Shown piece after piece: positions 4,701-61,594 of a stretch of 64,000 bases of DNA. Numbering within the stretch: the first letter of the stretch is position 1; each line of letters starts with the position of its first letter. Below the pieces are notes generated by a model. The model was not told the origin of the DNA. It searched no databases and saw only the letters and a list, made by a program, of their open reading frames with translations. A program made the position numbers and the translations under genes. Source of the stretch: Mytilus californianus (lineage: Eukaryota); NCBI RefSeq assembly GCF_021869535.1, contig NW_026262723.1, forward strand, positions 17,546,001 through 17,610,000, written 5' to 3'.

Positions 4701-6780
4701 TTCAGATTCCATTATTTTTATATATTTAGGCTACGTGTTGAATTAAGAGCCTTCAAAAATCACAGTACCAAGAAATAAAGTATATGGGCAAGTAATGAGT
4801 CATAACAACAGAGTAGGTGTGTTTGAATAACACATTGAAATAAATGCTTCATGCTAATACAAATGTTAAAATTTGAGGAGTATTTCTTACTTGTATTCTA
4901 TTTTATTTTCGTTATTTCATTTTTCAATTAAAATTAGTCATAAAATTGTTTTATTCATCAAATGTACTAAAACAAACAAAAGTCGAACAAACAGTGCACT
5001 AACACCCCTTTAATTTTTACTGAAAATCCTTGACGACAGACTTTACAAGTGGATCTTAAAAATGCATTACTTCAAAAAAATTGTGTGTGTATTATCCAAG
5101 GTAATTCGTCTTTAACCTCTGAAAATTTTCAGTCTACACTTTCACGAAATATTAGATTTGAATTTTTTTAATGTTTTTTGAACTTTCGGAACCTTACCCT
5201 GACAACCGATCAGACAATACTTTTAAGTTGACAAAAAGCCTAAAGGTATACTGAATGATGCTTAATAGCTAATAGATACATTTGTCTTTTAAAATACAAT
5301 TGTCATGTAAGAATGGTAATGATGCTATGTGGATAAAATCGGTTTGCAAGAGCTAAATTGTCTGCACGTCATCCCTACAATGGCTTCCAATTTCGCGATT
5401 GAAAAAAATAGGTGGCGCAATGGGGAGATGATTTTGACGAATAAGAATCCTGACTGTTCTATAATTGAAAAGTATGATTTTCAAGAGCACCGTGGTATTA
5501 AAAATGAAACCATGAGGCTTCATTAAACTTTGGAACAAGCATAATTTATGAACAGTATATTCCGGTAGAATTCATGACATATCAAAAGTAATGTCGCGAT
5601 CAGAATGATTTTGGCATCGTCCATTACCGCTGAACTAGTATACATTATTGTTTGGGGACCAGCTGAAGCCAGCTTCCTGATGCGGTTTTTTCTTGTTGTG
5701 TTGAAGACCCATTGGTGATCTTGGGCTGTTTTCTGCTCTTTTGTCTGGTTGTTGTCTTTTTGACACATTCCCCGTTTCCTTTCTCAAATATAAACAATAA
5801 TAGAACAAAACGAAGGACACATGCGATTATAAAAAACGTATAAATATAGATGTGCACAACACGTGTTTCTGATATGACCTTTAACCCTATCTTCTTCCAG
5901 TTTGTTCGACATCAAAAGTTTCGACAGTCAAATACAATTTGGAGAGCACAATGAATAAAAGGCAAAAAAAAAAGATCAGGCAAAATCAATAAAGGTAAAC
6001 TGCTTAAAGTTGAAACCTCAGATGTAGCACAATAGTATAATTTTAAAATGTAAAGTTACAGACAAAACGTATCATTTGAATTATGCCAATAACGAAGCAC
6101 TGGCTACTGGTACCCTAGGATACTGAGATAGTCCACTAGCAGTGATGCCCACCCTTCCCTTTCCCCAAAGATCTAGTAAAACGTTTATTCTCGTTCTAAC
6201 TTGATAATGATCCGCCATAGGTATATTTAGAACCCAGTGAACCAAGTCCTATAGAGATCAATAACTTTATAGTTAGTATCTTTTACCTTACTGTCACCAT
6301 TCCTTAGTTTGAATACTGATTCGTATAAAAGATAACATGAATCACCAAAATTTTTATGACAGTACAACAGATCACATCAACTCCTGCCTCATTTAAAAAG
6401 ATAGATATACAAACCAAGAACAAAACCGAACAACACATGATACACCTATTTTTTTTCCATTATCCATACCTGCCTACTTTTCAAAATCTCCACGCTGTTA
6501 TTACCATAAGTGTTTTTAATCTACTTCTAAATTGTTTGAATGAATATGTGTGTGCTTAATTACCCTTTTAACTCATTTTAATGTCTGTTTTGAGGTGTTC
6601 AAGTTATAAAATAAAGAATTTCAAAATTCAGGTGGAGACCTCTCGTGGGGGATATCCCCCATAAATCGGAATAGTTGGCAGGTCTGATTATCAATCTTAA
6701 TATAGCAGCATATTCGTATAATTTGACTTTTTCCAGATTGTGTCCTATTCCCTAACGTGACATTTCATTTTATTTACTTT
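1790..6780. repeat. Tandem segmental duplication, copy A
   Basis: Colinear blocks shared with 6800-9800, e.g. 1800-2545 vs 6802-7560, 2985-4130 vs 7575-8770, 5480-5620 vs 8815-8945, 6060-6150 vs 9285-9365, 6690-6765 vs 9720-9800. Confidence 0.92.
3480..4000 (-). pseudogene. Possible decayed TIR-like coding remnant, copy A
   Basis: Manual translation across frameshifts: ACMHVHDEDTLTINLLYMLYKSG...IEEICDNP/DSTFQGLCSMLRACHSVVVF.../KHPEHIIYMLD. This resembles the TIR betaA-alphaA-BB-alphaB-betaC pattern (compare PGQDYNNTLQNCLRCISKLVIILS in the 12077 gene). Multiple stops and frameshifts. Confidence 0.3.
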
Positions 6781-6799: not shown

Positions 6800-9700
6800 A
6801 GACGCATGTTTCTGGAATAACCTCCAGGAGATGACCTCCAGAATTGCACAACGCATGTTTCTGAAATAACATTCATGCAAACCAGAACAAATGTTTTCAA
6901 AAGCAAACATATAAAACGTTACCGAGATACTAAGTTTTATTCCTATGACACAATTTCATAAAAATTTGAAGATTTCAGACAAAATATTTCATTTGAATTA
7001 TGTCAATGAATACCTGTAAAGACCATAGAATTTTTTTTTAAAAATCAACAAGTTTCTTAGTCATAGAAAAATATTTCCAATAGAAAACAAATTATGTTGG
7101 CCAATGGTACATTTAGTGGCAGCATATATTGATACATGAGACGCGTGTTCGAAAATTAAATTCTAGTAGGTTGTACTTTGAACCAATAATTCGAAGTCCG
7201 GAATCATCAAATAAACGGTATTTTCGTTTCTATTAGTTACTGTTAATAATAAGTTGGCAATGTTAACACATCTTTTCGAACTTCTCCCGCGTTGTATTAC
7301 GTTAAACTTTGCTTATTTTCAAAACTTAAATACCATGCATATTTATTTTTTTTTTTAAAGAGTTGAAATTATGAAGATAGTCTGCGCAGAAAATTCTTGT
7401 ACTTTTCATAAACGTAGAATAATTTCCTTCGTAGCTGAAAAAAATGCTCACAGATTCATTCAAACATGACATTTTATAACTATAAAATACCATGAATTAA
7501 TCATATACGATAATTTTGATAGTTTTTTTTTTTTAATCATTCGTCTCTATATTTTCTGTTCAAAACATTTTATATTTGTATATATGTTTTATCATTTTTT
7601 GATTCTTCTAACGTTCGGTTGTGTTCTGTTTAGATATTTGTTTTATTGGGTTTTTTTTTCGTAGGAGTAGACAAATATCTTTATTAATGCAGCTCGCTTT
7701 TTTATTTAGGACCTTTTCAAATCCTTAAATGAAGCATCAAACCTTAACGAGATACAGACGATTGACCTTTGAAATGATCTCTGAGTATATTGACCTCTCA
7801 GAAAGATTCCCGTCTGGGTAATTTTATTTACTTGAATGTCCAAGATTACGGTTATTCTCTTAAATCCCATAACATTACTTACAGTTCGAATCTTAGCCGT
7901 TATTAATGCTCAATTACACTTTTTCAGAAAAAATCAGCGTTTCCAAGATTACGGAGGACAAAAACGGAGTGCAAATGCACCACGTTGAATAAGAAGAAAA
8001 GGCGTAGGTTTGATACAGCAAGGGGTCACTAATAACGCTGTCAACTTCATTTAAATCAGACAACATATAGCGATGGTTAGAATATAAAAAAAAACAATAT
8101 TCATGTTATTTGTTCCAAGTCCATCAAGGTCTTTCATATTCTTGATAATTACAAGATCTTGGGTATACATTTGTTTTTGTCTAAGTAAATCAATCAAAAT
8201 AAGCAAACTCTCTGGAGCCAGAGAATCATAATAGAACCAAATTGCATAATGGTTTATATACAGGCACTTCATGATAATTCATTGTCGTAAATTATTACTA
8301 TTTTGTAAAGGTCAAGCATGTATATTATGCGTTGAGGATGCTTTAAATTATTTCTTGTAATATAACCCAATCTCGTTTCGATAGAGTGACACGCTCTCAA
8401 AAAGCTACAGAATCCTTGTAAAGCACTTTCAGGGTTCTGTACGCGACTTGGTTGCAAGACCAAATTTCTTCTCCTATCTAACATCTTCTCTTTTTCAAGT
8501 TGAAATTCAAATTTCCTACGCTTCATACCACTTTGTTTGACCCAATTTGTAGAACATGTATATTAGATTTATTGTTAATTTGTTCTCGTCATGAATGAAA
8601 TATATAATCTTTGGATATTTGACCTCAATTCCATATTTTTTTCTATTTCATTTATCATATATCACAATCTTTTGTTCACATTAATGTTCATGAGAACATA
8701 TGTTAACACAAGCTACCCCACCTCTCCCTCAATCCAAAGCGAGACAACCCTTGGACACTGTATAATTACACTAATTTGTATCTGGGTAAAGGAATCATAG
8801 CTATAATTGAACGTGTGATTTTTAAGAGAACCATAGTGTTAATACTGAAATGATAAGGCTTCATTATACATCGGAACAAGCATAGTATCATATAATTCGG
8901 TAGAATGTATGACACGTTATATTTAACGTAATGTCCCGATCGGCATTGCCTCGGCACTTTCCGCCTTCATTCGAGTGTTGTTCGATGGGTCAGGTCAAAT
9001 ATAATATATATATTCTTGAATATAACATTAACTTTCAATACGGTTCGTAAACCTTTTTTTAGCATGGTTAGTTGAGGAAATACAGGCAACAAATAAAGGA
9101 AACATACCGTTGAAAAAATATGATACCCATGTTCACAGCACGTGTTTCTCGATTGACCTTCATCAACAGTCAAACACAAAAAATTGGAAGAGCACAATAA
9201 CAAAAATGCTAAAAAATATTAGGAATAATAAATTAAGGTATACTGGTTAAAAGAGTTAAAACCTCGCATTTAGCCTAATTTTATGAATGTATCATTTGAA
9301 TTATGCCAACGAAACACTGGCAACTGATACCCTAGGGTACTGAGATAGTCCACCAGCAGCGGTGCCTACCCCCACCCCTCAAGTTGTAGTTAAACGTATA
9401 TGATTTTCGTGCGAACGTTACGTGCTTTTTTAAATAACAGTCATTGGGATACAATCCGTCGTAGGTATATTCAGTACCAGTGAACTAAGCCCTTATGGAG
9501 ATCACATTACTTTAGGGTTAGTGTCTTTTACCTTAGTATCACTAATCCTTGACTTAAATACTGATACATAACAAGGATAACAGGAATCACCCAAATGTAT
9601 TGGACAGTAAAACAGACCACTACAACCACTAACACCTGACTCATTCAAACAGATAGACTTACAAAAAAAAAAGAAAAACATCAACGAACAACACATGACC

Positions 9701-9800
9701 CAGCTAGTTTTTTTCCATTATCAGTCTTAATATAGCAGAATAGTCGTATAATCTGAATTTTTTTCTAGATTGTGTCTTACTCCCTAACGTGACACTTTGA
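6800..9800. repeat. Tandem segmental duplication, copy B (shorter; lacks equivalents of about 2550-2980 and 4150-5450 of copy A)
   Basis: Same colinear blocks as copy A. Confidence 0.92.
8051..8660 (-). pseudogene. Possible decayed TIR-like coding remnant, copy B
   Basis: ORF 8269..8526 contains NPESALQGFCSFLRACHS and HPQRIIYMLD; an upstream frame reads KIIYFIHDENKLTINLIYMFYKLG. Homologous to 3480-4000. Confidence 0.3.
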
Positions 9801-10534
9801 AACTGTATTTTCATAGCGGGTGGTACATTAATATAAGGAGACTCTTATCCTGTCGACGCATCTGATCCCTCTCCCTTTGGAGTTCGTTCGAACTTAAGGT
9901 TGTTCACCTTTTTTGTTAATTCACGATTGATTTAGGAAATAAAAACATTCAAAGTTGCCTTTATATAAAGAAACTCTGATATGAACCTCATGCGTTTGTG
10001 TACCATGGGAGAAATATTCACAGTTATTAATAGTCTTTCAAACACGAGTATGTTTCGCGGCTATAGATATATCTCACATGTATATGTCTCCCATTGTGCC
10101 TTTCGGTGAGATTGTAGCTACGCAACACCCTCTCATTTGAAATGCAGTCGATAATCTATAACTAAAAGTATATTTAGCTATAAGTCTGATGTTACTTATT
10201 TTTCAAATCGTTTTATTAAGTCGTTCGGTTACTGTAATTGACATTTATCCCACATAACCTTTTATTTAAGTTTGCATTGCTTCCTGTTATTTTTTCCTAC
10301 TATTTACATTGACAACTACCTAGTTGATTGCTAGAAGCCTTCCGAATGACCCCCATTCCATTCTGATGTACAATAGTGTGGGTTCAACTTATATTAACTA
10401 TAATTATGTTAATAAGTAGATTTGATCTGATATTACTATTTTGATCATGTTTGATATACTTGTAATAAGAGAAGATCAAGTGTGTTGTTCGCCGTTTGTT
10501 TTGCAAGCTACTCTAGCAGTTGTTGTAAACTGTT

Positions 10535-12077
10535 TTATATGTTTTCGTGTTTTCTAATCTCAATTTCCAAATAAGGCTCTATTTCATATGAGACGTCTGC
10601 TCCGCTATCTACAGTATTGTCAACGAAGTTCCTCAAGTAAGAACAATCGGGAGATAATTTCCGATGGAGTTTCATAGGTTGTAAGCAGTTTTGAATGTTT
10701 GCTAAACCGAGGTTACAAGAATGGCATATGACATCTTCTGCTATTCCACAGTAATAAAAACCAGCTTCAGTAAAACGATTGATGACGTCATCATCGATGC
10801 AATAACTTGTTTCTGCGTTTAAAATCTGTTTGAAAGATTGTACTCTACCTTCTATAGTCTTCAAATCCTCATTGCAGATTTTTGTCGAATGTCCGCTTGA
10901 CACGTCCACATTTTTACTGAGAATGAAAGTGCAGTTTTGATAGTATTTTTTTATGAGCAACCATTGGATCTGCATCAGAATTCCAAGATCTAATGCAGCC
11001 GCCACAACTAAAACACTGGACATAATCTGAAGTATGAAGGTTAAAAAATCCGGCTCTAGATAATTTGATACGAAACTCCTTGACCTGAATTGGAAAGTCT
11101 TCAAATGTATCCACACGAGATTGAAAAGTTTTAAACTTGGGAAAACATATAGATTCCCTACCTTCTTCACGTTTTTTCGCGTTATTCTGTTTAAAAGGAT
11201 TTAATGAAAGCTCGCTTGATTCATTGTGTTTAATTCCATTCCGTCTATAATGATACCAACTCTGTTTACAAACATTTTTTCGTAAAATTTCAAAAATTTC
11301 GAACAGATCTGAATTTAGTTGTTTGTTTATTTGTAATCCTTCCAGGTCAAACCTTTTTATATCGCAAATTCTTATGAATCTAAACTGTTTCTGATGAAAT
11401 AGACTATTATACAGATTCAAAAGACAAATCGGTTGTGTATTGCCAATACCCAATAAAGTGTTTATATGAAAGTTTACTTTGTCATCGTGTATATCTAGCC
11501 CCCATCCACGTAAAACATCCATTGCAATCTTGTCTTTTTGTCGCAATTCTTCTTCCATTTCAATTATTCGAAGATGTAAAACTTTTCCAAATACCTGACA
11601 GAACAGTTCTAACCTTGCATTGCCTTTATCTGAAGGGTCAGATTTTCTAAGTGCAAGACGAAGTTTAGACCAGTCATCATCCCATGCCTGGAAAGGGATC
11701 ACAGAACTTAAACAAAATGGCAGATCTACTTCATCTGATGTTATAACTGGTATCATATCAACATGTAAGTTTTTGTTTAAAATAAAGCTAACAGCTGTAT
11801 TCACTACACTCGTGAATTGGTCATCTGAAACGGGAGACAGGATTATTACAAGCTTTGAAATACATCTGAGGCAGTTTTGTAAGGTGTTGTTGTAATCCTG
11901 ACCCGGTAGAAAATCTATGTTTGAATTTATGTTGTAAAATCCATCCCTTTTTAAATTTTTAATGAATATTTTTGTCCATTCTTTGTTCGATGACTTCTCA
12001 CTGCACAGGCAAAAAATAGGTACTTCTTCAGGCTGTAATGTTGCTTTCTGTAGGATTAACTCTAGATCGACATTCAT
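10535..12077 (-). CDS. TIR domain + unassigned middle domain + two BIR domains (IAP/BIRC-family), no RING; 513 aa after removing one A from the A7 run (T7 at 10946-10952 on + strand)
   Basis: ORF 10914..12077 gives TIR (PIFCLCS...DFLPGQ...SKLVIILS, about 11645-12026) and BIR1 (RVDTFEDFP...LSRAGF...DYVQCFSC...W...DPMVAH). ORF 10535..11170 supplies KKYYQNC, completing CX2CX16HX6C, and BIR2 (RVQSF...EAGFYY...VICHSC-x16-HRKLSPDC). Splice-acceptor-like TTTTAATATTGCAG lies 10 nt upstream of the ATG. Confidence 0.9.
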
Positions 12078-12380
12078 CTTTGACCTACTGCAATATTAAA
12101 ATTAGTAACTATTTAAGAAAGACATAAAAAACAACACATAAGAAATTTCGTGCGTCCGCTGTGCATTTACGGATCTGCCTTCACAAGAAACGCTTAAATC
12201 GAAACATATGAGTCTTGTGACCAATAAGCTGTTTGATTATCTATAAAACTTTGACTTGATGACATATAAAGCCCTATCTTTTGCAGTTCATCAAAGATTA
12301 GAATAAGAATGTGTAGAAAAACATGAAACATGCTTCAAATAAACTCATCATAGATACATGTACTAGACTTAAAACTGTGT

Positions 12381-12424
12381 ACGCCAGACGCGCGTTACGT
12401 CTACAAAAGACTCAACAGTGTCAC
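12381..12424 (-). ncRNA. Degenerate minimal type I hammerhead ribozyme within a short Penelope/retrozyme-like repeat (about 12350-12500)
   Basis: Minus strand: CTGTTGA GTC TTTTGTA GAC GTAA CGCGCG TC TGGCGT. Core CUGAUGA is changed to CUGUUGA and GAAA to GUAA. Confidence 0.7.
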
Positions 12425-13029
12425 CCGAATAAAAAAAAATTAAAAAGGTCAAATAAAGTACGAAGTTGATGAGCAATGAGAACCCAAAATTCGGAAAAGT
12501 ATGAAAAGTGAAAGAAAAGTAAACTTATAAAGTTAATAGATTTAAATTTCATTGTCTGTAGGACATTTATCCTCTTACATATTAAAACTTGTAAAATCAC
12601 ATGAAAGATACTGAAATGTACTGTTTCAAATACTTTAACAGTATAAAGCTATTTTTTTCAAGTCATTTATTTTGAAATGTCTAAAATTTCTAATAAACAT
12701 AAGCTTATGTTCAAATCTTAATCCAGAATATTCATTTGAATACTAGAACATTTTTGTTTAGATATGTTCGAGCTGGAAATAATCCGATGTTCACCAATTC
12801 TTTGCCTCTTGTCCTTTTCTTGTTATCATGTTTATCATTTTGATGGCATTTTCTATATTTTCAGGCTTCTTTTTTTATTTATTTTTGGGTGTTAACTGAG
12901 GTTTGATATACTTTCTTGTGGCTGTGATACTTTTCCCCAAAAAGAAACCACAACCGAAATGACTTTTCAGATTTAAATAAAATTAGCTTCTTATTTCGTT
13001 TTGCTACTTATGTAGATATAGGAAGATTT

Positions 13030-14900
13030 TAAAAAGTAAAATAACAAAAAGTCCGAACTCCAAGGAGAATTCAAAATGGAAAGTCCTTTATCAAATGGCA
13101 AAATCAAAAGCTGAAACACATCAAACGAATGGAAAACAACTCTCATATTCCTGACTTAGTACAGGCATTTCCTTATGTAGAAAATGGTGTATTAATCCTG
13201 GTTTTATAGCTAGCTAAACCTCTCACTTGTATGACAGTCGCATAGAATTCCATTATATTGACAACAATGTGTGAGCAAATCAAACAGACATAATAGATAC
13301 AAATGTCAAAAATTGGGGTACAGCAGTCAACATTGTGTTATAATCTTAATCACTATAAAAACAAATAACTATTTCAACAAAGAAAAACAAAATGACATAT
13401 AAACAAAGTACAAAGAAAAAAATGAAAGACAAGACTATAAAAATTTACCATAGCAAAATAACATAATGGTGGGATGTATAAATACCGAGCCACGCCAAAA
13501 GTACATTACCAAAAATGGACTAAACAGTAAAGGTTAAAAATACACAAAGAAAAATATAAAGAACAATATAACACGTAATTAAGATGATAAACAACGTCAG
13601 TACCTAGAATCTATACTTCAAGACGATCATGTGTTATTTGTGAAGTTGATACGGAATATTTTTCAACTAGGTCTTGTTATCTTCCGATGAAATATTTTAG
13701 AAAAAAGAACTAGACGTTCTTTGACATAACCCTGGTTCATCAACTTTCTGATCAGACACTGGTGACGTTTTATAAAGTCTGAGTAGCAGCTGCAAGCTCT
13801 TGAATACCGAATGAGTTTGGAAATGTATATCCCATATGCAGGTGAAGCTAGTATATTGCTGCTAAGGTGGGGGAAAGTTATAATTTTGAAATTAAAATCG
13901 TCTCGCTTGTCATAGATTCTGGTACTGAGATGACCGCTTATGTCAAATTCGAGAGATAAGTCTAAAAATGAGGCGGAGGAAGCCGTGTCTTTTGTTTCTT
14001 TATTTTCTAGTTTAGGGGGACATATTAATGGAACTCAATCAGAAAAGTTTGGATTGTTAATGGAAAGAACATCATCTATAGATCTGAATGTGAAATAAAA
14101 TGATCTGGTTTCTTTGATCTTCTTGTTTTTGACAAGTGTCTGAAGGAACTCCGACTCATATGAAAATAGAAGAGGTCGGCAAGTAGAGGCACATAGTTCG
14201 TTCCCATAGGAATCCCGACAATTTGATGAAAAAGTCTACCTCCAAATTCAACAAATATGTAGTAAATAAGAAACTCCATCATACTGATCACTTGTTCCTC
14301 TGTGTAGAACGTTTTGCCTTTTTCTTCACTATTAACAAAATATGCCGTATGGTATCCCAAAGCAATAGATTTGTAGCGTATGGTACCATTTTGTATATTG
14401 AAAAGCATTGTGGATTATTTCTTTTACACGTTTTTTCAATTTCAAATGAGGAATGGTGGTAAAAAGGGTTGAAAAATGAAAAGGTTTCATAGAATTATTT
14501 TCAGAGAAAGATCGAGATTTAAAATTACCTAGAAGTTCTTTACAGTTTTTTTAGGATCCACATTATGATTAATACCATTACGCGAGTAAACAGTTTCACA
14601 GTATTTCTGAAGAACTTCTTTCACTGCAGACAGAATTTTTGTCAATCCAATAGACAATTCCTTTATAAAACATGCAGATGAGCCGGCAATGTACCGTTGT
14701 GAGGCTTAGGTATATATCCAATGCAAACAAGGTAAATGTAAGTCCTCAGATTTGCTGTTCAATGTAATGTTCATTGCCATGAAGGACTTATGATTCACAA
14801 AAATATCATCATTGTCAAACCATACTGTCGCTTGAATTTAACAAGACATAAACAACTTATTTAGAGTGCATTTATTTCCAATATAAATTTGTTTTCAACG
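13030..14900 (-). mobile_element. Penelope-like retroelement remnant (Naiad/Chlamys-type RT, disrupted) with 3' non-coding end
   Basis: Minus-strand translation across frameshifts: ...YIAGSSAC...STLFTTIPH...QIVGIPMGTNYVPLLADLF...IDDVLSINNP...SASFLDL...IYDKRDDFNF...FPHLSSNI.ASPAYGIYISKLIRYSRACS. The RT ends near 13600 with no C-terminal GIY-YIG; 13030-13600 is the 3' repeat found elsewhere in the window. Confidence 0.85.
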
Positions 14901-15072
14901 ACATTGGCTCGGTATTAAAACTGCAACTATTGTGATGTTTCTTGTAAAGATTTTAACTGCAAAACCTGCCGCGGTGATTTCAGATGGTAAATTGGTCGGA
15001 ACTACAAAACTATAAGTTACTTGTTTTTCTGCTTTGTATCGATATGATGAGTTAATCACTCATCAACTGATT

Positions 15073-15449
15073 TTTATAGTTTGTTCTTATGTTGTACTGT
15101 TACACCACTGTCCCAGGTTAGGGAAGGGTTGGGCACCCGCTTACGTGTTAAACCCCGCCACATGCTCTGTCCCAAGTAAGGAGCCTGTAATTCAGCGGTT
15201 GTCGTTTGTTGCTGTATTCATATTTGTATTTCGTTCATTGTTTTTACATAAATCAGGCCGTTAGTTTTCTCGTTTGAATTGTTTTACATTTGTCATTTCG
15301 GGGTCTTTTATAGATGACTATGCGGTAAGGGTTTTGCTCATAACTATCATTTGCTATACGGTGACCAATAGTTGTTAAATTATATGCCATTTGGTCTCTA
15401 GTGGAGAGTTGTCTCATTGGCAATTATACCACATCTTCTTATTTTTTAT
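15073..15449 (+). mobile_element. Unclassified interspersed repeat with conserved 3' end GGAGAGTTGTCTCATTGGCAAT(C/T)ATACCACATCTTCTT
   Basis: Related copies at 17205-17625 and 35990-36390, an end fragment near 43760-43820, and reverse fragments near 39800-39900. Confidence 0.75.
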
Positions 15450-15462
15450 ATATACGAGTAGA

Positions 15463-16190
15463 AGGACATTTCAGTAATTAGAAAAATATCCGTGTTGAAA
15501 ATATAAAATAACACTTTAACTTTAATAATGCTTTATATATTTGGTGCGTACGAAGTGCTTTTCTTGATTTAACTTCACTAGGAACGCTCAAACACAAAAA
15601 TTAGGAAGAAGAAATAAAAATTTTAAAGTAGAGGATATGTGTTTACCTGTTGTGACTTCCGGCTATACCAGTTCATTGTAAAATGTGTGTATTTTTGACA
15701 TACTTATAGTATCATTGTAAATTGTAGAGAAATGAACAAAACTTTAAGGCATATACCATCATTAATCGAACATAAAAATTATACAAATTGATTATTTAAA
15801 CTTACAAAGCAGCAATAGTATATCGTCATTCACCTGACCACATGAATAATTAATTGTTTTTGACTGATAAAATATTAAGCGAAGGATCATGTTTCATAAT
15901 TGCAGCGTGTGGCAAAGTAAGAATGTTTTATGTGTATAAGTATGAGGTTTCATTGGGCCTATCAATACAGTATAACAATTACATGGTCGACCGCTATGAC
16001 TGCATCTTAATTTATACCTGGACTTTGAGTATTTAAACTTATTTGACATAATACCGCTATATTTATACTGTTATTTCCATCCGACTTTATTGGGCCTTCC
16101 ACAGCAACTATAATGTTTGACTAAAGGGTGCAGAAATATAAGTTCGACCTCTCCCATCTGGCAGTTAAACCATGTTTAAGTGACCCTTTT
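15463..16190. repeat. Local duplication (partner 18607-19205)
   Basis: Colinear from GGACATTTC(A/G)GTAATTAGAAAAATATC to GGCAGT(T/A)AAACCATG. Each copy contains a degenerate hammerhead-type segment (15545-15590, 18680-18728). Confidence 0.85.
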
Positions 16191-17204: not shown

Positions 17205-17625
17205 GTCTTTTGATTGAGTTAAGCCATTTCAATTGATATTTTATAGTGTGTCTTTCTATGTTGTGATGTTACACTATTGTTTCAGGTAGGCTGAAGGTTG
17301 GCGCCTATTAAAACGTTTAAACCCGCTGCATTTGTTGCACCTGTCCTAAGTCAGGAACCGGATGTTCAGTGGTTGTCGTTTGTTGATGTGGTTCATAAGT
17401 GTTGCTCGTTTCTCGTTTTTTATATAGATTAGACCGTTGGTTTTCCTGTTTGAATGGTTTTACACTAGTCATTTTTGAGGCCCTTTATAGCTTGTTGTTC
17501 GGTGTGAGCCAAGGCTCCGTATTGAAGGCCGTACTTTGACCTATAATGGTTTACTTTTACAAATTGTGAATTGGATGGAGAGGTGTCTCATTGGCACTCA
17601 TACCACATCTTCTTATATCTATTAT
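17205..17625 (+). mobile_element. Unclassified interspersed repeat (same family as 15073-15449)
   Basis: Shared TGTTACAC...GTCC(T/C)AAGT...GGAGC/GGAAC...GGTTGTCGTTTGTTG...GTCTCATTGGC...ATACCACATCTTCTT. Confidence 0.75.
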
Positions 17626-29409: not shown

Positions 29410-29955
29410 TTGTTGTGTATATCTGTTATTTGTACAATAGTTGGCATATTGCAGGATGGTATGATTTATTTGTTGTGTATATCTGTTATTTGTACAATAG
29501 TTGGCATATTGCAGGATGGTATGATTTACTTGTTGTGTATATCTGTTATTTGTACAATAGTTGGCATATTGCAGGATGGTATGATTCATTTGTTGTGTAT
29601 ATCTGTCATTTGTACAATAGTTGGCATATTGCAGGATGGTATGATTTATTTGTTGTGTATATCTGTTATTTGTACAATAGTTGTTATATTGCAGGATGGT
29701 ATGATTTATTTGTTGTGTATATCTGTTATTTGTACAATAGTTGGCATATTGCAGGATGGTATGATTCATTTGTTGTGTATATCTGTTATTTGTACAATAG
29801 TTGGCATATTGCAGGATGGTATGATTCATTTGTTGTGTATATCTGTTATTTGTACAATAGTTGGCATATTGCAGGATGGTATGATTCATTTGTTGTGTAT
29901 ATCTGTCATTTGTACAATAGTTGGCATATTGCAGGATGGTATGATTCATTTGTTG
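29410..29955. repeat. 60-bp tandem repeat, about 9 copies
   Basis: Unit TTGTTGTGTATATCTGTTATTTGTACAATAGTTGGCATATTGCAGGATGGTATGATT(T/C)AT is aligned in register on consecutive 60-nt lines. Confidence 0.97.
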
Positions 29956-32477
29956 GTATGCGTAAGCTTGTAGCTCAAATTAAACTCTTTAAAAAAAAAT
30001 CGGTGACATATATACTTTTAAATGGAAATAGCATGATACGATGTGGAAATTTCCCATGACGTCCCTTTACAAAACATATATTTATTTTTGTGGTACAAAG
30101 AAAGATAAATGTTGATAGACTTGCACGCAAGACTTGAGATATATATATAAATATAATTCGACAAAAACACAAGATCCTTCAAAAAACTCTTTCACGGAGT
30201 AAATGTTTGAAAATTAATCAAATATATTGCAAATGAATATTAAAGAGTCTTAATACTACATAATATTTAAAGTATTTTGAAACAATTTACTGGCACATCT
30301 AAAAAAATGTAATATATCGCTATATATTGCTGTTGAAGAGAATTCGAGAAAATATTGCAACTTTTATAGGAAATCCTTAACCAAAAACAATTAATTTGTA
30401 CGTTGACTACAATTAAAAAAACAATACTTTACTTCTGAACGAATTTTGATTTTAGCTAGGAATTTCCATCTTGTTCATTGTTCGATTTAATACTCGAAAT
30501 TGAACGAAATATAAAAATTGAAGTTTTTGGTCATATTTCATTAGGCATTATGATGAAGATATAAGTTCAGAATGACGACATTATCATGTTGAAACTTTAA
30601 AATACACATATTTGAACCTATGATAATGAAATTTTAATAAGATTGATCTGTCTCTTTATCACAAAAGTCCTCAAGATGTACAAAAGAAAAGAGTTTCATT
30701 TGACAAGCATGTCACCCCATCCCCAAATAAAAATAAGCGAAGAAAAGAAATCCGCTTGTATTGTTGTATATGTTTAGCTATCACAAAGTAATGGTGACAA
30801 AATAAAGAATTCAAAAGAGAAAAAAAATGGCCGGATTTATACTAAAACAATAAACGAAAACAAATATGACAGAGTATCAATGAACCAAGGACACCCGACT
30901 TGGGATAGGCAAATAAGAACGCGGCGACATGAAACAGACAAAAACAACATAAACACAAAAACTTAAAGTTCATATATTAAGACTACTCAGTCGCGATTAC
31001 TGAAAGCTAGTTCACATGTGCCCTGTAATCTCAATGTAAAATATAAAATCAATGTATATTTTTTTGATTGAATTGTTTCACATTTAATCATGCATGGGCC
31101 TTTTATCGCTGACTATAAGATATGGGTTTTGCTCCTTGTTGAAGGCCGTACGGTAAAATATACGCCAGTCATTTGGACTCCATGGCAATCAAACCACACC
31201 TCCTTGTAGTGTGTCATATATATCAGTACTTTTTTCAATATTGTCTTACATACTAGTATTTGGTTTATCATTTAGACCTCTTGCAAACTGAGGGGGGGGG
31301 GGGGGGGGGGGGGGAAACTCGGCAGATTGCGGTACCCTACATCATCAATTGTCAATATAATACTTCCAGGGTCCGGGTATTATCATATTCTAATTACCAC
31401 ACACTAAAAGTGTTAATTACTGGTAATTTTATATTAAATATTTCAATTTTGAAATGTTTGTGATATCAAAGTGACGTCGCAGGTGACATTATGGCATAAA
31501 AGTGACTAGACCTATTTTCTTGTTTGTCTATCAATAAATTAACACAACTTTGGAAAAAAATCAACATAAACGGAAAAGAATTGAGCCAATGGTGATGTGT
31601 ATTTCGATTTCATTGTTTTCAACAGAGAAACTATCGTGAGAGTGATGACCATGTTCATCCGTCCATCCACACTTTGTATCCGTATATCTTTCTTTAATAT
31701 TAAAGATAATAGATAGTACCTAATGGCATTGTGCATCACCTGTTTATCCGAATGAATTTTTGTTCTTTGATTTTTTTTTTTTGTGGGGGGGGGGATTCCC
31801 ATAGCATTAAGAAATGGTGGTGGGCATTTTGTATCCACAACTTCACTTAACAAGTAACAAGGTTTTCAGATAAGGGAAGAGGAATGGGGCATGGAATTTA
31901 TGAGCAATGTAAAAAAAAAAAAATCATTTCATCGGAGTTAATACTGGGATTTGAGAATAGAGAATTAGAGGCAAATACGTGAAAATCAATTCCTCTGGAA
32001 CTTGCTAAATCGATCTCTGGAAAGATGGAGAACCTCACAACTTGTAAGATGTGATTATTTGACTAATCTGTTCTTTTTCTTAACACCTGGCAACAAATGG
32101 ATTGATTGTTTCACTATGTAATATTTACTGAAGGAACATAAAGCTTTTATTTACTCATCTTATTTGTGTTCAATCATAAAGTAGCATATGTTTAGCGGGG
32201 ATACCTAATTTATTTAATATTACCACAACGTGAAATGAGTTATTCCCCTTTGTTCTACTGGTTCATAAAATAGTTACAATAATCATCGTACGTGTATTAT
32301 TTCACGTTTCGTCTAACATCTACACATTTAATCATATAATTCCCTAAAATTAAAATATTTTAGAACAGACAAATTTTCATAAGTAAATAACCAAACAAAT
32401 TTTGCGTTTGAGGGATTTGAAAAGTTATGACAAATATTGTTTATCTCTTTGAAAAGTATCTCTCTCTAACACTTACT

Positions 32478-54492: not shown

Positions 54493-55449
54493 CTATGCAA
54501 ATTCTGGCTGAAACTGAAGGTACTGAATCAGTCTGTTTGGCAATGGCAACCGCTGTATTATATCAGGGTACTGGAACTGTTGCAATATCCGGATACGACA
54601 TCGGTTCTGCAGACTGCCAGCCGTGGGTAGTTTGTAAATCTGTAAATGGTCATATTGTGTTTCTTTGTCATTTAAAACTATTGCCATTCTACTACCACAG
54701 TTTGAAAATATTGGAAGGTAATTGACGGGACAAGAATGTATTGCACAAATGAAGCGATTGTACTGGATACAATGAAGAGTTTGTGTTGTGTCAGCATTGA
54801 ATATATAAACACAAACATCAACTGGCTGCATGCGTCGTGCTCTTTTTTCACGACAACAACAACCTGCTCCACTCGAAACCATAATGGCAAAGATAAGATA
54901 GCCATCTTTGGCAAAGAATATATCTTTTAAATGTGGATTTAGACTAGAATGCATATCATCAACTCGTGGATTTGTACGCAGCACCGACCACGAATCTGTC
55001 TGCACCAAACTTAAACTGTTATCCTCTCCTCGTAGAAAACTTGTGGCAGCTATTCTAGATGAACTGAATCTTGGATCAAATGCAAATAAACTATGATGAA
55101 ATGGCAGAGTGACCTCCCTTATCAGCTCTCGCTTCTTGAGACAAAATAACTGGAAGACAAATGCACTGTTATTGTCTGATTTTATGCTTGGAATTTTAAT
55201 CAGGCACACGGTTCCATCAGGACTTATCTCCCCTCGCAAGGCCTCATTCACAAATTCAACATTCTTTTTACCAAACACGCCTAGGAATTTGTTTGTTTCC
55301 AAGTCAATAACACCAAATTGTGTCATCATGTTTCTGACTAGATGAAGAACGACTGTTGACTCATGATAGCATAAAACACTTTTGACATGAAAGTTTTGAA
55401 TAGATGAGAGTTGTGCAGGAATATGATTGTACTCAAAATGTTCCGCCAT
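54493..55449 (-). CDS. SOCS-box protein with beta-rich, propeller-like N-terminal region (putative Elongin BC-Cullin5 substrate receptor), 318 aa from MAEHF
   Basis: C-terminal SLQNRCRIRILQQF...IIQRLPLPNRLIQYLQF fits the BC-box (SLQxLCRxxI) and Cul5-box (LPLP). Repeated blade-like motifs (GEISPDGT, FAFDPRF, FFAKDGYL, IFSNCGSRMAI). Acceptor TTTCCGTAG at 55469-55477 then AAGATGG, so the first 42 codons of the 360-aa ORF are probably intronic. Confidence 0.85.
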   Translation of the reverse strand: MAEHFEYNHIPAQLSSIQNFHVKSVLCYHESTVVLHLVRNMMTQFGVIDLETNKFLGVFGKKNVEFVNEALRGEISPDGTVCLIKIPSIKSDNNSAFVFQLFCLKKRELIREVTLPFHHSLFAFDPRFSSSRIAATSFLRGEDNSLSLVQTDSWSVLRTNPRVDDMHSSLNPHLKDIFFAKDGYLIFAIMVSSGAGCCCREKRARRMQPVDVCVYIFNADTTQTLHCIQYNRFICAIHSCPVNYLPIFSNCGSRMAIVLNDKETQYDHLQIYKLPTAGSLQNRCRIRILQQFQYPDIIQRLPLPNRLIQYLQFQPEFA

Positions 55450-57625
55450 CTTGGTGAACTTGTTGCGTCTACGGAAACTGAACAGTGAATGAGATTTGTT
55501 AAGATTGATGATACCCTGGCGGCTAATACAAAACGTAGGACTACAGTCTTTGAACACAACTCCATTGCATGACATTGTGGTCTCTGAAAATCCAGCAGCC
55601 TCTGAAACAGAACGATATTCACTGAATTATATTGAAAAAGAAGTAAGTACACATAAAAATGTACATTGTGTTATGTCAGCTCTAAAACGCAAAAATATAC
55701 ACAAAATATTTTTTTGAAAAACATGTGGACGCATAGAAATGTACAATGTGTTATTGACTGAATAAAATAGTCTTTTAATAGCTAACAGCTTCTAAAATAG
55801 AAAGGTAATCACTGCAGACTACATATGATTTAAATGCAAAACACAAGTGAGGACACATAGAAATGTAAAGTGAATCATGACTTAAGTACAAGTCGCCAAT
55901 AGCAAACAGCTTCTTAAACATACACTGAATGAAAATCACTGCAGATTACATATAGTTTAAATGCAAAACAAGTATGGACACATAGAAATATACGCTTTGC
56001 TATTTGCAGAATAAAATGTCTCTGAAAAGCCAACAGCTTCTGAAACAGAAATTAAGACTTGATCTGAATGAGTATTCATAACAAGTTTGGACAAAATGAA
56101 TATACCTACTCTGAAAATCCATAAACTTCTATAACAGAGATATATATTACTAATTAGAGTATATAGAGCCTGATAAACGTCCTGCTCCTGAGTGCAACTC
56201 TTGCCTAATTATTTTAGCCTAAGATTAATAAGTAATTTGTTTCCAATATTAACAAAATTTTATTTACAATTTCTTGTGTCAAATCATCCTGCAAACCAAA
56301 TAATGTCATGAACAGTTGGGATGACAAATTATTGTTCCTTTTCCCATTGCATAAACCCAAAAAATTTAGTTTTTTAAAATAATTTGGGACAGAAAATTTT
56401 TTTTCATCTGCTTTCAATAAGAGTGGCCTCTCTTGGAAATTTTTATGGTTTTAGTTAAGCAGCAATCTACTAATCAATTTATTATTTTAGAGAAAAAAAA
56501 ATTCATTTACTTAAAACTGTTTAGTCATTTTTATTTTAAAGTTTATAGCCTTTAAAGATTTAGATAAATATATATCATTTCCTGTACAATAGGATAACAG
56601 ATTGTGGCCTTGACTTACTTGATATGCAATCATTTATCTTTATGAAATTTCAAAATGAAATAAAACATATTTATGTAAATGAAACAATCCATATGCACAT
56701 GCCTCCTGGTAATTGTATGTTAAATGACAATTATGACAAAAACAGTTATATAGCACTCCTTACTTTTTCTAGAAACACAATTTATCAAAAAGGTCGAGCA
56801 ATTAATCAGTAAAAACTAGTTTACTTTACACCTGTGTATTGGTTTAATTTCTACAGAACAATGTTATAAACAAGCAGTTAAATCTTAAACCTTTATTCTA
56901 TATAGAATTAATAAAGAATGTAAATCACTATAATTCTGATAAAAATTAAGAAAATTGATATTAACAGTAAAATGGGTCTGTCTTTCATAATTGGACTTAT
57001 TTTTTTCGTGGTTTTCATTTTGGCCTTGGACAGTTTTGATAATCTGATTTTGTCATTTTAGACTAAAATGCGATTTTAATTTTTGCGATATTGAGAAAAA
57101 TCCTGTTTAATTCATATAAAAAAAAAATTAAATGCGAGTTTAAATTATTGCGATTATAACCCTGTCGCATTTTTCGCAATAATAAAAAGATCGTAATAAT
57201 TTCTGAATTTACAGTAACATCATCCTTAATTAAACAGTACATATATATAGGACCCATTATAGCATCCTTCAGATCACCCTAACACAAACCTCCCATCATT
57301 ATCATCTACAGTTAAAAATGAAAATTGTGTTTGAAGAGTTGATATCATGAAAGATTAGTTCTTCAGGTCTCTATCACGTGTCACTTCACATTTTTCAAGT
57401 ATGAATGATGAACTCTTCACAACAAAATACATTTATCATTGATCTACTTAAATCATTCAGTTGGTTATCACATTATAAAATTTATAGTTTCATTGTTTTC
57501 TCATTGATAATTTGATGACAATTTGATTTTTTCAACTTCCTTAAAAATTTTCATTTACACAACTTTTACAGTCATTTCAATCAATCATAACTCACTTCAC
57601 ATAAACATGATAAATATTATCTTAA

Positions 57626-59872
57626 ATGTGTGCAGAACCAACTTTCAGTAACTTCATGGATGTGTGCAAACCAACTTTCAGTAACTTTATGAATGTGTGC
57701 AAGACCAACTTAAAGTAATTTCCTGGATGTGTGCAAAACCAACTTTCAGTAACTCCATGGATGTGTGCAAAACCAACTTTCAGTAACTCCATGGATGTGT
57801 GCAAAACCAACTTTCAGTAACTCCATGGATGTGTGCAAAACCAACTTTCAGTAACTTCATGGATGTGTGCAAAACCAACTTTCAGTAACTTCATAGATGT
57901 GTGCAAAACCAACTTTCAGTAACATCATGGATGTGTGCAAGACCAACTTTCAGTAACATCATGGATGTGTGCAAAACCAACTTTCAGTAACTTCATGGAT
58001 GTGTGCAAAACCAACTTCACGTAACTCCATGAATGTGTGCAAAACCAACTTTCAGTAACTCCATGGATGTGTGCAAAACCAACTTAAAGTAATTTCATGG
58101 ATGTGTGCAAAACCAACTTTCAGTAACTCCATGGATGTGTGCAAAACCAACTTTCAGTAACTTCATAGATGTGTGCAAAACCAACTTTCAGTAACTTCAT
58201 GAATGTGTGCAAGACCAACTTAAAGTAATTTCATGGATGTGTGCAAGACCCACTTGGAGTCATTTCATGGATGTGTGCAAAACCAACTTTCAGTTACTTC
58301 ATTGATGTGTGCAAAACCAACTTAAAGTAATTTCATGGATGTGTGCAAGACCAACTTGGAGTAATTTCATGGATGTGTGCAAAACCAACTTTCAGTAACT
58401 TCATAGATGTGTGCAAAACCAAGTTTCAGTAAATTCATGGATGTGTGCAAAACCAACTTTCAGTAACTTCATTGATGTGTGCAAAACCAACTTAAAGTAA
58501 TTTCATGGATGTGTGCAAGACCAACTTGGAGTAATTTCATGGATGTGTGCAAAACCAACTTTCAGTAACTTCATAGATGTGTGCAAAACCAACTTTCAGT
58601 AACTTCATGAATGTGTGCAAACCAACTTTCAGTAACTTTATAAATGTGTGCAAGAGTAGACCAACTTAAAGTAATTGCATGGATGTGTGCAAAACCAACT
58701 TTCAGTAACTTCATGGATGTGTGCAAAACCAACTTTCAGTAACTTCATGGATGTGTGCAAAACCAACTTTCAGTAACTTCACTGATGTGTGCAAGACCAA
58801 CTTAAAGTAATTTCATGGATGTGTGCAAAACCAACTTTCAGTAACTTCATGGATGTGTGCAAAACCAACTTTCAGTAACTTCATGGATGTGTGCAATACC
58901 AACTTTTAGTAACTTTATGGATGTGTAATACCAACTTTCAGTAACTTCATGGATGTGTGCAAAACCAACTTTCAGTAACTTAATGAATGTGTGCAAGACC
59001 AACTTAAAGTAATTTCATTGATGTGTGCAAAACCAACTTTCAGTAACTCCATGGATGTGTGCAAGACCAACTTTCAGTAACTTCATAGATGTGTACAAAA
59101 CCAACTTTCAGTAACTTCATGGATGTGTGCAAAACCAACTTTCAGTAACTTCAAAGATGTGTGCAAAACCAACTTTCAGTAACATCATGGATGTGTGCAA
59201 AACCAACTTTCAGTAACTTCATGGATGTGTGCAAAACCAACTTCCAGTAACTCCATGAATGTGTGCAAAACCAACTTTCAGTAACTCCATGGATGTGTGC
59301 AAGACCAACTTAAAGTAATTTCATGGATGTGTGCAAGACCAACTTGGAGTCATTTCATGGATGTGTGCAAAACCAACTTTCAGTTACTTCATTGATGTGT
59401 GCAAAACCAACTTAAAGTAATTTCATGGATGTGTGCAAGACCAACTTGGAGTAATTTCATGGATGTGTGCAAAACCAACTTTCAGTAACTTCAAAGATGT
59501 GTGCAAAACCAAGTTTCAGTAACTTCATGGATGTGTGCAAAACCAACTTTCAGTAACTTCATGAATGTGTGCAAACCAACTTTCAGTAACTTTATGAACG
59601 TGTGCAAGACCAACTTAAAGTAATTTCATGGATGTGTGCAAAACCAACTTTCAGTAACTTCATGGATGTGTGCAAAACCAACTTTCAGTAACTTCATGGA
59701 TGTGTGCAAAACCAACTTTCAGTAACTTCATTGATGTGTGCAAAACCAACTTAAAGTAATTTCATGGATGTGTGCAAAACCAACTTTCAGTAATTTCATG
59801 GATGTGTGCAAAACCAATTTCAGTAACTTCATGGATGTGTGCAAAACCAACTTTCAGTAACTTCATAGATGT
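57626..59872. repeat. 34-bp minisatellite, about 66 copies, several sequence variants
   Basis: Unit AAAACCAACTTTCAGTAACTTCATGGATGTGTGC; variants TTAAAGTAATTTC and TTGGAGTAATTTC. Confidence 0.97.
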
Positions 59873-60079: not shown

Positions 60080-61594
60080 CACTTGTCTATTGTCCATGTC
60101 CACAGGCACTCGTCTATTGTCCATGTCCACAGGCACTCGTCTATTGTCCATGTCCACAGGCACTCGTCTATTGTCCATGGACACAGGCACTCGTCTATTG
60201 TCCATGGACACAGGCACTCGTCTATTGTCCATGGACACAGGCACTCGTCTATTGTCCATGTCCACAGGCACTCGTCTATTGTCCATGTCCACAGGCACTC
60301 GTCTATTGTCCATGGACACAGGCACTCGTCTATTGTCCATGGACACAGGCACTCGTCTATTGTCCATGGACACAGGCACTCGTCTATTGTCCATGGACAC
60401 AGGCACTCGTCTATTGTCCATGGACACAGGCACTCGTCTATTGTCCATGGACACAGGCACTCGTCTATTGTCCATGTCCACAGGCACTCGTCTATTGTCC
60501 ATGGACACAGGCACTCGTCTATTGTCCATGGACACAGGCACTCGTCTATTGTCCATGGACACAGGCACTCGTCTATTGTCCATGGACACAGGCACTCGTC
60601 TATTGTCCATGTCCACAGGCACTCGTCTATTGTCCATGTCCACAGGCACTCGTCTATTGTCCATGTCCACAGGCACTCGTCTATTGTCCATGGACACAGG
60701 CACTCGTCTATTGTCCATGGACACAGGCACTCGTCTATTGTCCATGGACACAGGCACTCGTCTATTGTCCATGGACACAGGCACTCGTCTATTGTCCATG
60801 TCCACAGGCACTCGTCTATTGTCCATGGACACAGGCACTCGTCTATTGTCCATGGACACAGGCACTCGTCTATTGTCCATGGACACAGGCACTCGTCTAT
60901 TGTCCATGTCCACAGGCACTCGTCTATTGTCCATGGACACAGGCACTCGTCTATTGTCCATGTCCACAGGCACTCGTCTATTGTCCATGTCCACAGGCAC
61001 TCGTCTATTGTCCATGGACACAGGCACTCGTCTATTGTCCATGGACACAGGCACTCGTCTATTGTCCATGGACACAGGCACTCGTCTATTGTCCATGGAC
61101 ACAGGCACTCGTCTATTGTCCATGGACACAGGCACTCGTCTATTGTCCATGTCCACAGGCACTCGTCTATTGTCCATGTCCACAGGCACTCGTCTATTGT
61201 CCATGGACACAGGCACTCGTCTATTGTCCATGGACACAGGCACTCGTCTATTGTCCATGGACACAGGCACTCGTCTATTGTCCATGGACACAGGCACTCG
61301 TCTATTGTCCATGGACACAGGCACTCGTCTATTGTCCATGTCCACAGGCACTCGTCTATTGTCCATGGACACAGGCACTCGTCTATTGTCCATGGACACA
61401 GGCACTCGTCTATTGTCCATGGACACAGGCACTCGTCTATTGTCCATGTCCACAGGCACTCGTCTATTGTCCATGGACACAGGCACTCGTCTATTGTCCA
61501 TGGACACAGGCACTCGTCTATTGTCCATGGACACAGGCACTCGTCTATTGTCCATGGACACAGGCACTCGTCTATTGTCCATGGACACAGGCAC
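60080..61594. repeat. 27-bp minisatellite, 56 copies, two variants
   Basis: Unit CACTCGTCTATTGTCCATG(TC/GA)CACAGG; 17 TC-type and 39 GA-type units, counted from the ORF translation (S vs D). Confidence 0.98.

Follow-up and report, generated by a model that had tools for sequence, protein, structure and literature searches.

Toll/interleukin-1 receptor (TIR) domains and baculoviral IAP repeats (BIRs) are docking modules at the core of two major systems of innate immunity and cell death, and their union in one polypeptide is unreported in the literature searched. Here we describe a gene in a stretch of 64,000 nucleotides from the mussel Mytilus californianus (NCBI RefSeq assembly GCF_021869535.1, contig NW_026262723.1, positions 17,546,001 to 17,610,000 of the forward strand; the whole stretch is hereafter termed the window, and positions are given within it), the product of which combines an N-terminal TIR domain with a family-specific middle domain and two BIRs (TIR-mid-BIR-BIR). 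On balance, we think it probable that this is a real, population-intact gene encoding a 513-residue cytosolic member of a Mytilus protein family, for which a role as a scaffold or regulator may be proposed.

The closest described systems each share a part of this architecture. As with the inhibitor of apoptosis proteins (IAPs) XIAP, cIAP1/2 and DIAP1/2, the window protein has two BIRs that pass the Pfam cut-off and display the spacing CX2CX16HX6C; it differs from them in lacking RING, UBA and CARD domains, in having a TIR at its N terminus and an orphan domain, and in that the second Trp and the acidic cluster of canonical type II BIRs are replaced in BIR1, with the conserved Trp being absent from BIR2. 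NAIP (BIRC1), which is the best solved match to the BIR pair, likewise joins BIRs, without a RING, to an innate-immune module that oligomerises, but it combines NACHT-LRR with three BIRs rather than a TIR with two, and the order of the BIR types is reversed. The TIR adaptors MyD88, TIRAP/MAL, TRAM and TRIF resemble the window protein in having a cytosolic, scaffold-type TIR with a D..PG BB-loop (Z 12-14 in structure alignment); however, identity is 12-17% and, where these adaptors have a death domain, RHIM or lipid-binding motif as their effector part, the window protein has a pair of BIRs. With respect to MyD88, the TIR of the window protein is at the N terminus, with no death domain before it according to Pfam. 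Oyster TIR-STING (PDB 6wt7) is also a fusion of a bivalve TIR with an immune module, and is linked to the window TIR both by structure and by profile, although its partner domain is STING, a cyclic-dinucleotide sensor, rather than a BIR. The type I layout of the IL-1 receptor family, i.e. signal peptide, Ig-like ectodomain, transmembrane helix and cytosolic TIR, recurs in the receptor paralogues described below (P0008, P0009 and a locus on contig C35 of the M. californianus genome), but these have a single V-like Ig domain, with weak scores, and an orphan domain and two BIRs after the TIR. The window protein is not an orthologue of MyD88, cIAP, XIAP or NAIP.

Two surveys of bivalve IAPs (PMC7831173 and PMC8917759) report many architectures, with TIR never being given as an IAP domain; the preliminary description of this DNA speaks of TIR-containing IAPs in oyster IAP surveys, but neither of these two bivalve surveys lists any. 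No description of TIR-BIR or TIR-IAP proteins in bivalves was found in the literature searched, which did not cover the bivalve TIR survey of Gerdol et al. 2017 (Dev Comp Immunol), and the family is apparently so far undescribed. A TIR-BIR family with soluble and receptor forms would physically tie Toll/IL-1R-type sensing to IAP-type control. In our view, its main interest lies in the receptor forms, the cryptic TIR missed by annotation and the orphan domain.

The coding sequence is a single exon on the minus strand (10535-12077), with the ATG at 12077 and the TAA stop at 10535-10537, such that the coding part without the stop is 10538-12077. As assembled, it appears as two overlapping open reading frames (ORFs) in different frames of that strand, 10914-12077 (387 aa) and 10535-11170. 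The break is due to an extra A in an A7 homopolymer (10946-10952), which lies inside BIR1, directly after the codon for the BIR1 His ligand. With the run read as A6, the frame continues H-KKYYQN-C and both ORFs fuse into 513 codons. Piece A (10953-12077 minus, 375 aa) and piece B (10538-10951 minus, 138 aa) were kept separate in every search.

A frame that is split within BIR1 by A7, accompanied by very low RNA depth and by the presence in the same assembly of other paralogues with a TGA, a frameshift or several stops, might suggest that the window copy is a decaying pseudogene in which the frameshift is real and fixed. Comparison of four public sequencing runs with window positions 9700-15600 argues otherwise. 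A 2,435-nt contig from the DNA run X1 covers the whole gene, its sole gap being 1 nt omitted at 10946 (depth 7.02/7.02), and a 3,660-nt contig from X2, a DNA run of a different study, also covers the whole gene with its sole gap at 10946 (depth 14.8/14.8); both thus have A6 at full depth. The four coding-sequence substitutions listed for X2 comprise two synonymous changes, N298K and Y379H, and create no stops. The M. coruscus orthologue P0002 (UniProt A0A6J8EE96, named 'BIRC2_3') is unbroken at the A-run site. Its genomic locus (L020, CACVKT020008931.1), which has 96% DNA identity to the window gene, is disrupted only at a different homopolymer, a T run near codon 21 (~5680-5740) that shifts the first ~20 codons; because of this difference in T-run length, the public model A0A6J8EE96 begins at a Met inside the coding sequence, with half of the TIR missing. 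That two assemblies are broken at two different homopolymers, with two short-read sets having neither break, suggests assembly miscalls. The results therefore point to the A7 break being an assembly error from a miscalled homopolymer, or else a private null allele, rather than a sign of gene decay.

Codon comparison with M. coruscus (493 codons, dS 0.050, dN 0.021 for synonymous and nonsynonymous change, respectively) gives a dN/dS of 0.41 with no stops, a value that rests on 38 substitutions only; the synonymous excess has p ~0.01 by a rough binomial estimate. By region, dN/dS is 0.25 for the TIR, 0.35 for BIR1, 0.34 for BIR2 plus the tail and 0.79 for the middle domain. These estimates show a signature of purifying selection on the window gene. 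Decay of the window copy is, in the light of the read data, the orthologue and the codon comparison, improbable, and the gene is considered below as intact, with the A run as A6.

The N-terminal domain (aa 17-148; 11634-12029 minus) is a genuine but cryptic TIR by profile homology and fold, as evidenced by a sub-threshold Pfam match, profile matches to the PDB, an AlphaFold model (AF2) and structure alignment. Pfam TIR_2 matches aa 29-135 over nearly the whole profile at 21.2 bits (E=4.3e-4), compared with a cut-off of 28, and most relatives in the family score the same or lower; the BIR-bearing relatives above the cut-off are P0015 (46.4 bits), P0024 (28.4) and L025 of the M. californianus genome (28.3), and P0017 also passes it (30.1 bits). 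When a profile built from the N-terminal domains of five family members was run against the PDB, the top matches (E 1.4e-3 to 0.07) were all TIRs, including those of Hydra TRR-2 (E 1.4e-3), TLR15/2, oyster TIR-STING and TLR1. Among 1.84 billion representative proteins, a profile spanning the TIR and the middle domain recovered 16 family members at E<=1e-30, together with weaker matches (E 4e-16 to 1e-3, with TIR proteins at 4e-16 to 1e-5) confined to the TIR part of the profile. Ten of the weaker matches were scanned, and each passes Pfam TIR_2 (28-230 bits); nine are proteins with either a TIR alone or several TIRs (38-230 bits), and the remaining one is P0024, which also has a BIR and belongs to a distant TIR-BIR clade.

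Structural comparison leads to the same fold. The AF2 model of aa 17-148 has a predicted local distance difference test score (pLDDT) of 72-91, and in an exhaustive VIA structure alignment against 48,161 solved chains, the top 14 are all TIR or SEFIR domains, with TRIF (Z 14.0, 129 residues, root-mean-square deviation 2.9), TRAM (Z 12.8) and MyD88 (Z 12.2) aligning over 126-130 residues, and with IL-1RAcPb (Z 12.3), IL-18Rbeta, ThsB, oyster TIR-STING (Z 12.2) and Hydra TRR-2 among the further top ranks. The BB-loop, or box 2, motif DFLPG (aa 55-59; 11901-11915 minus) lies in the loop that follows strand B in the model, aligns with the D..PG of the Hydra TRR-2 TIR and is present in most family members. 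With respect to the TIR that the preliminary description had placed at aa 18-144, Pfam taken alone is therefore formally borderline, the match being sub-threshold, but this is overruled by the profile and fold evidence. Because the TIR lies below the Pfam cut-off, surveys of IAPs or TIR proteins that count domains would miss the fusion.

Many TIRs across life are NAD+-cleaving enzymes (NADases), and the Foldseek and VIA lists for the window TIR include SPARTA TIR-APAZ, ThsB, SARM1 and C. elegans TIR-1. It may thus be asked whether the window TIR is itself a SARM1- or ThsB-like NADase that the BIR pair senses or restrains, such that the protein executes cell death. The NADase class depends on a conserved catalytic Glu, and there is no Glu among the invariant or near-invariant TIR columns of the family alignments, which makes membership of that class unlikely. 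In addition, the best Z scores are to the scaffold TIRs of TRIF, TRAM, IL-1RAcPb and MyD88, and the D..PG of box 2 is of the TLR/MyD88 type. An enzymatic TIR is, in our assessment, a poor prospect; the domain looks like a scaffold-type TIR, as judged from its alignments.

Pfam BIR (PF00653) matches twice, at aa 321-375 (E=1e-11, 45.6 bits) and aa 411-481 (E=7e-11, 42.9 bits), in both cases well above the cut-off of 22.9. BIR1 (~aa 315-385; 10922-11135 minus) spans the frameshift; its ligands, C355-x2-C358-x16-H375-x6-C382, have the exact CX2CX16HX6C spacing at A6, with C382 lying beyond the break. BIR2 (aa 411-481; 10634-10846 minus) has the same exact spacing in its zinc ligands, C451-x2-C454-x16-H471-x6-C478. 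Foldseek finds BIR1 to be 36-39% identical to DIAP1 BIR2, XIAP BIR3 and cIAP1 BIR3, and the best solved sequence relatives of the BIR pair are the NAIP proteins (E 2e-28), with BIR1 aligning with NAIP BIR2/3 and BIR2 with NAIP BIR1, which likewise lacks the conserved Trp.

Relative to NAIP BIR2, the first Trp is retained in BIR1, but W, E and W are replaced by M, A and Y, and E-E-G-D by S-S-D-A; BIR2 has no Trp anywhere. In the XIAP-Smac literature, these altered positions are residues of the groove that binds the IAP-binding motif (IBM); on this view, neither BIR would be expected to bind Smac or caspase-9 in the classical manner. The preliminary description had made such a remark for BIR2 only; as judged by alignment, the canonical type II pattern is not kept in BIR1 either.

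Between the TIR and BIR1 lies a family-specific middle domain of ~165 aa (aa 149-312; 11142-11633 minus), predicted to consist of a long helix and a small alpha/beta unit. All members can be aligned over it; W-G is invariant and WYHYRRNG nearly so. Modelled alone from 17 sequences, it gave a pLDDT of 72.6, with a helix of ~40 residues followed by a beta-hairpin, two helices, a strand and a helix. A wide VIA search gave a best Z of 4.4 (weak STAS/BCH-like similarity), with zero chains at Z >= 5, Foldseek against the PDB gave nothing below E 1, and the ESM Atlas gave structures at TM <= 0.40 and features without a usable match. To judge from its conservation, the segment denoted X in the preliminary description is a conserved orphan domain rather than a linker.

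The protein ends in a conserved, acidic-aromatic tail with the motif PYLE[ILV]E..H (10538-10579 minus), which is found at the end of nearly all full-length members. This motif was considered as a TRAF2 or TRAF6 site and rejected, its spacing being off the consensus. Pfam finds no RING, UBA, CARD or death-fold domain in the window protein, and there is no hydrophobic segment within it (maximal 19-residue Kyte-Doolittle mean of 1.20). Much of the preliminary description is thus borne out, i.e. the TIR-X-BIR-BIR architecture (from the Pfam BIR matches and the TIR profile and fold evidence), the DFLPG loop at aa 55-59, two BIRs with exact spacing once the A run is A6, the loss of the conserved Trp in BIR2 (shared with its best solved match, NAIP BIR1), the repaired frame of 513 codons, and a cytosolic protein without RING, UBA, CARD or transmembrane segment (from the Pfam scan and hydropathy).

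The gene belongs to a family whose organism-labelled members, as found by word-index searches, are all from Mytilus (M. coruscus, M. trossulus and M. edulis); label-less members from Logan, JGI and ENA data were found too. Public annotations name the members plain 'BIRC2_3', 'BIRC4/XIAP' or 'uncharacterized protein', which represents an annotation blind spot with respect to TIR-BIR proteins. In a maximum-likelihood tree, the family splits into at least five clades with good support and one distant clade. The window gene groups with P0002 and P0003; the others comprise P0004, P0019, L003, P0012 and P0016; P0005, P0011 and P0022; P0013, P0014 and P0015; and P0006, P0008, P0009 and L005, with P0024 and L025 forming the distant clade. 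Most clades have a copy in the M. californianus genome (1.65 Gb), and in every such copy the part from TIR to BIR lies in a single frame; some of these copies have a stop or shift in the assembly, and L007 is a clear pseudogene. The distant-clade copy L025 (G000:C99:51387530-51389167, minus strand) is an intact single-exon gene of 547 aa that is above the Pfam cut-off for both TIR_2 (28.3 bits) and BIR (60 bits). The cytosolic part is a single exon in every paralogue with examinable coding sequence, including the receptor form; no multi-exon parent of a retrogene was found among the paralogues, poly(A) remnants not having been searched for.

Two members, P0008 of M. coruscus and P0009 of M. 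trossulus (LOC134718217), have a signal-like N terminus, an Ig V-like ectodomain and a transmembrane helix ahead of TIR-mid-BIR-BIR. Their similarity to Ig domains is weak (antibody VL matches at E 5e-5 to 1e-2, with Pfam Ig_3 sub-threshold), and their transmembrane helices are strong, with Kyte-Doolittle means over 19 residues of 2.73 and 3.43. In the M. californianus genome, a receptor locus of ~21 kb (G000:C35:26523037-26543988, minus strand; L005, L006 and L014) contains Ig-like, transmembrane and cytosolic TIR-mid-BIR-BIR exons in order on one strand, with the Ig exon being 84% identical. Since the exons at this locus are collinear and the architecture is annotated in two other species, it is not a lone mis-prediction. 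The C35 Ig-like exon is itself a member of a family with >40 matches genome-wide. Elsewhere, a 24-aa segment of the window (17553-17624, plus strand) has a tblastn match (58% identity, E 0.006) to an intron-derived N-terminal extension of P0006, which probably reflects a shared repeat fragment.

Transcript data bear on the 5' end of the window gene. A probable 3' splice acceptor (cag, 12088-12090 minus) of a 5' leader intron lies 10 nt upstream of the ATG. A 520-nt contig of run X11 (record 12) matches 11760-12089 and then continues with 190 extra letters that are not colinear with the window, and RNA depth in X21 falls from 3.71 to 0.09 at the acceptor. In a stranded RNA-seq run, of which 6% was sampled, there are few exon reads, with a drop in depth at ~12090; all have their first mate on the plus strand, and hence the RNA derives from the minus strand. 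X11, which is RNA by guess, covers parts of the exon only (10529-10770, 10947-11202, 11484-11658 and 11760-12089) and has no sequence on those unique flanks that are covered in the DNA runs. The gene had been described as intronless; this holds for the coding sequence, but the 5' leader is probably spliced, as the X11 contig extends beyond the cag acceptor. The continuity of the ORF argues for one mRNA for the TIR and BIR parts. At the other end, a pattern scan gives two candidate poly(A)-signal hexamers (10212-10266 minus), ~270-320 nt downstream of the stop.

Given that the stretch between acceptor and ATG has no in-frame stop, that the RNA contig runs 190 nt past the acceptor, and that genes of the receptor clade have exactly such a layout, upstream coding exons for a signal peptide, ectodomain and transmembrane helix could be hidden, with the window gene then encoding a membrane receptor rather than a cytosolic protein. 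However, tblastn with the receptor paralogues gave only noise (E>0.3) in the 64-kb window, with no homologue of an Ig or transmembrane exon. Further, the clade-A relative L001 differs by a 1-nt indel between acceptor and ATG, as would untranslated sequence; the ATG and the first two codons are conserved in L001. We give little credence to hidden upstream exons, and the window gene is discussed further as encoding a cytosolic protein.

Several points weigh against a functional, population-intact TIR-mid-BIR-BIR gene with a scaffold role. The support from RNA consists of only a few reads or low-depth contigs, and the TIR and BIR parts are not joined by any single RNA record; the number of substitutions underlying the dN/dS value is small; and several paralogues in the same assembly also have stops or shifts, some of which could be real null alleles. 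At the protein level, the TIR of the window protein misses the Pfam cut-off, both BIRs are off the canonical residues of the IBM groove as judged by alignment, rendering classical caspase or Smac binding doubtful, and complex prediction on two copies of the TIR plus middle domain gave a score of 0.00, i.e. no answer and evidence neither way. It is very improbable that the N-terminal domain has another flavodoxin-like fold (SEFIR, nucleoside 2-deoxyribosyltransferase-like or receiver-like), despite the sub-threshold TIR_2 scores of the window protein and most members and the presence of SEFIR, deoxyribosyltransferase and receiver domains at VIA Z 9-11, since every sequence-profile link leads to TIRs, TIRs occupy the top structural ranks with Z up to 14, and three BIR-bearing relatives pass the TIR_2 cut-off.

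With the window gene as a cytosolic TIR-mid-BIR-BIR protein, the N-terminal scaffold TIR would most likely recruit it to TIR assemblies that have been activated, either of the TLR/MyD88 type or formed by the Ig-transmembrane-TIR-BIR receptors of its own family. The long helix of the orphan domain may add self-association, and the BIR pair would then bring in partners that control cell death or NF-kB, or sequester them. Having no RING or other E3 ligase domain, the protein would not be a ubiquitin ligase but a scaffold or a competitive regulator. The adaptor or dominant-negative role proposed in the preliminary description, with binding to TLR/MyD88, TRAF/TAB or caspases, is conjectural. Mussels are noted for unusual disease tolerance, and the gene may link pathogen sensing to cell-death control. 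A more far-reaching possibility is that mussels have a self-contained TIR-BIR system, in which receptor and soluble forms co-assemble via their TIR and orphan domains, coupling extracellular recognition directly to BIR-held caspases or IBM proteins and so bypassing the death-domain route of MyD88; we view this as rather unlikely.

Other features of the window include a single-exon ORF of 360 aa (54493-55575, minus strand), the C terminus of which matches the Pfam SOCS_box at 28.4 bits (cut-off 23.5), with the rest being without a Pfam match. The region directly upstream of the TIR-BIR gene (12261-15600) consists of very high-copy repeats that are also abundant in RNA runs; its summed contig depth in the DNA runs is 1e4-1e6, compared with ~8-20 over the gene. 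Tandem arrays are present at 1-742 (period 77, 9.6 copies, 99% match), where the array is cut by the window start, and at 29410-29959 (period 60, 9.2 copies). Toward the other end, a minisatellite at 57626-59872 (period 34, 66 copies) is adjoined by a second at 60080-61594 (period 27, 56 copies, 97% match), which is GC-rich and open in several frames.

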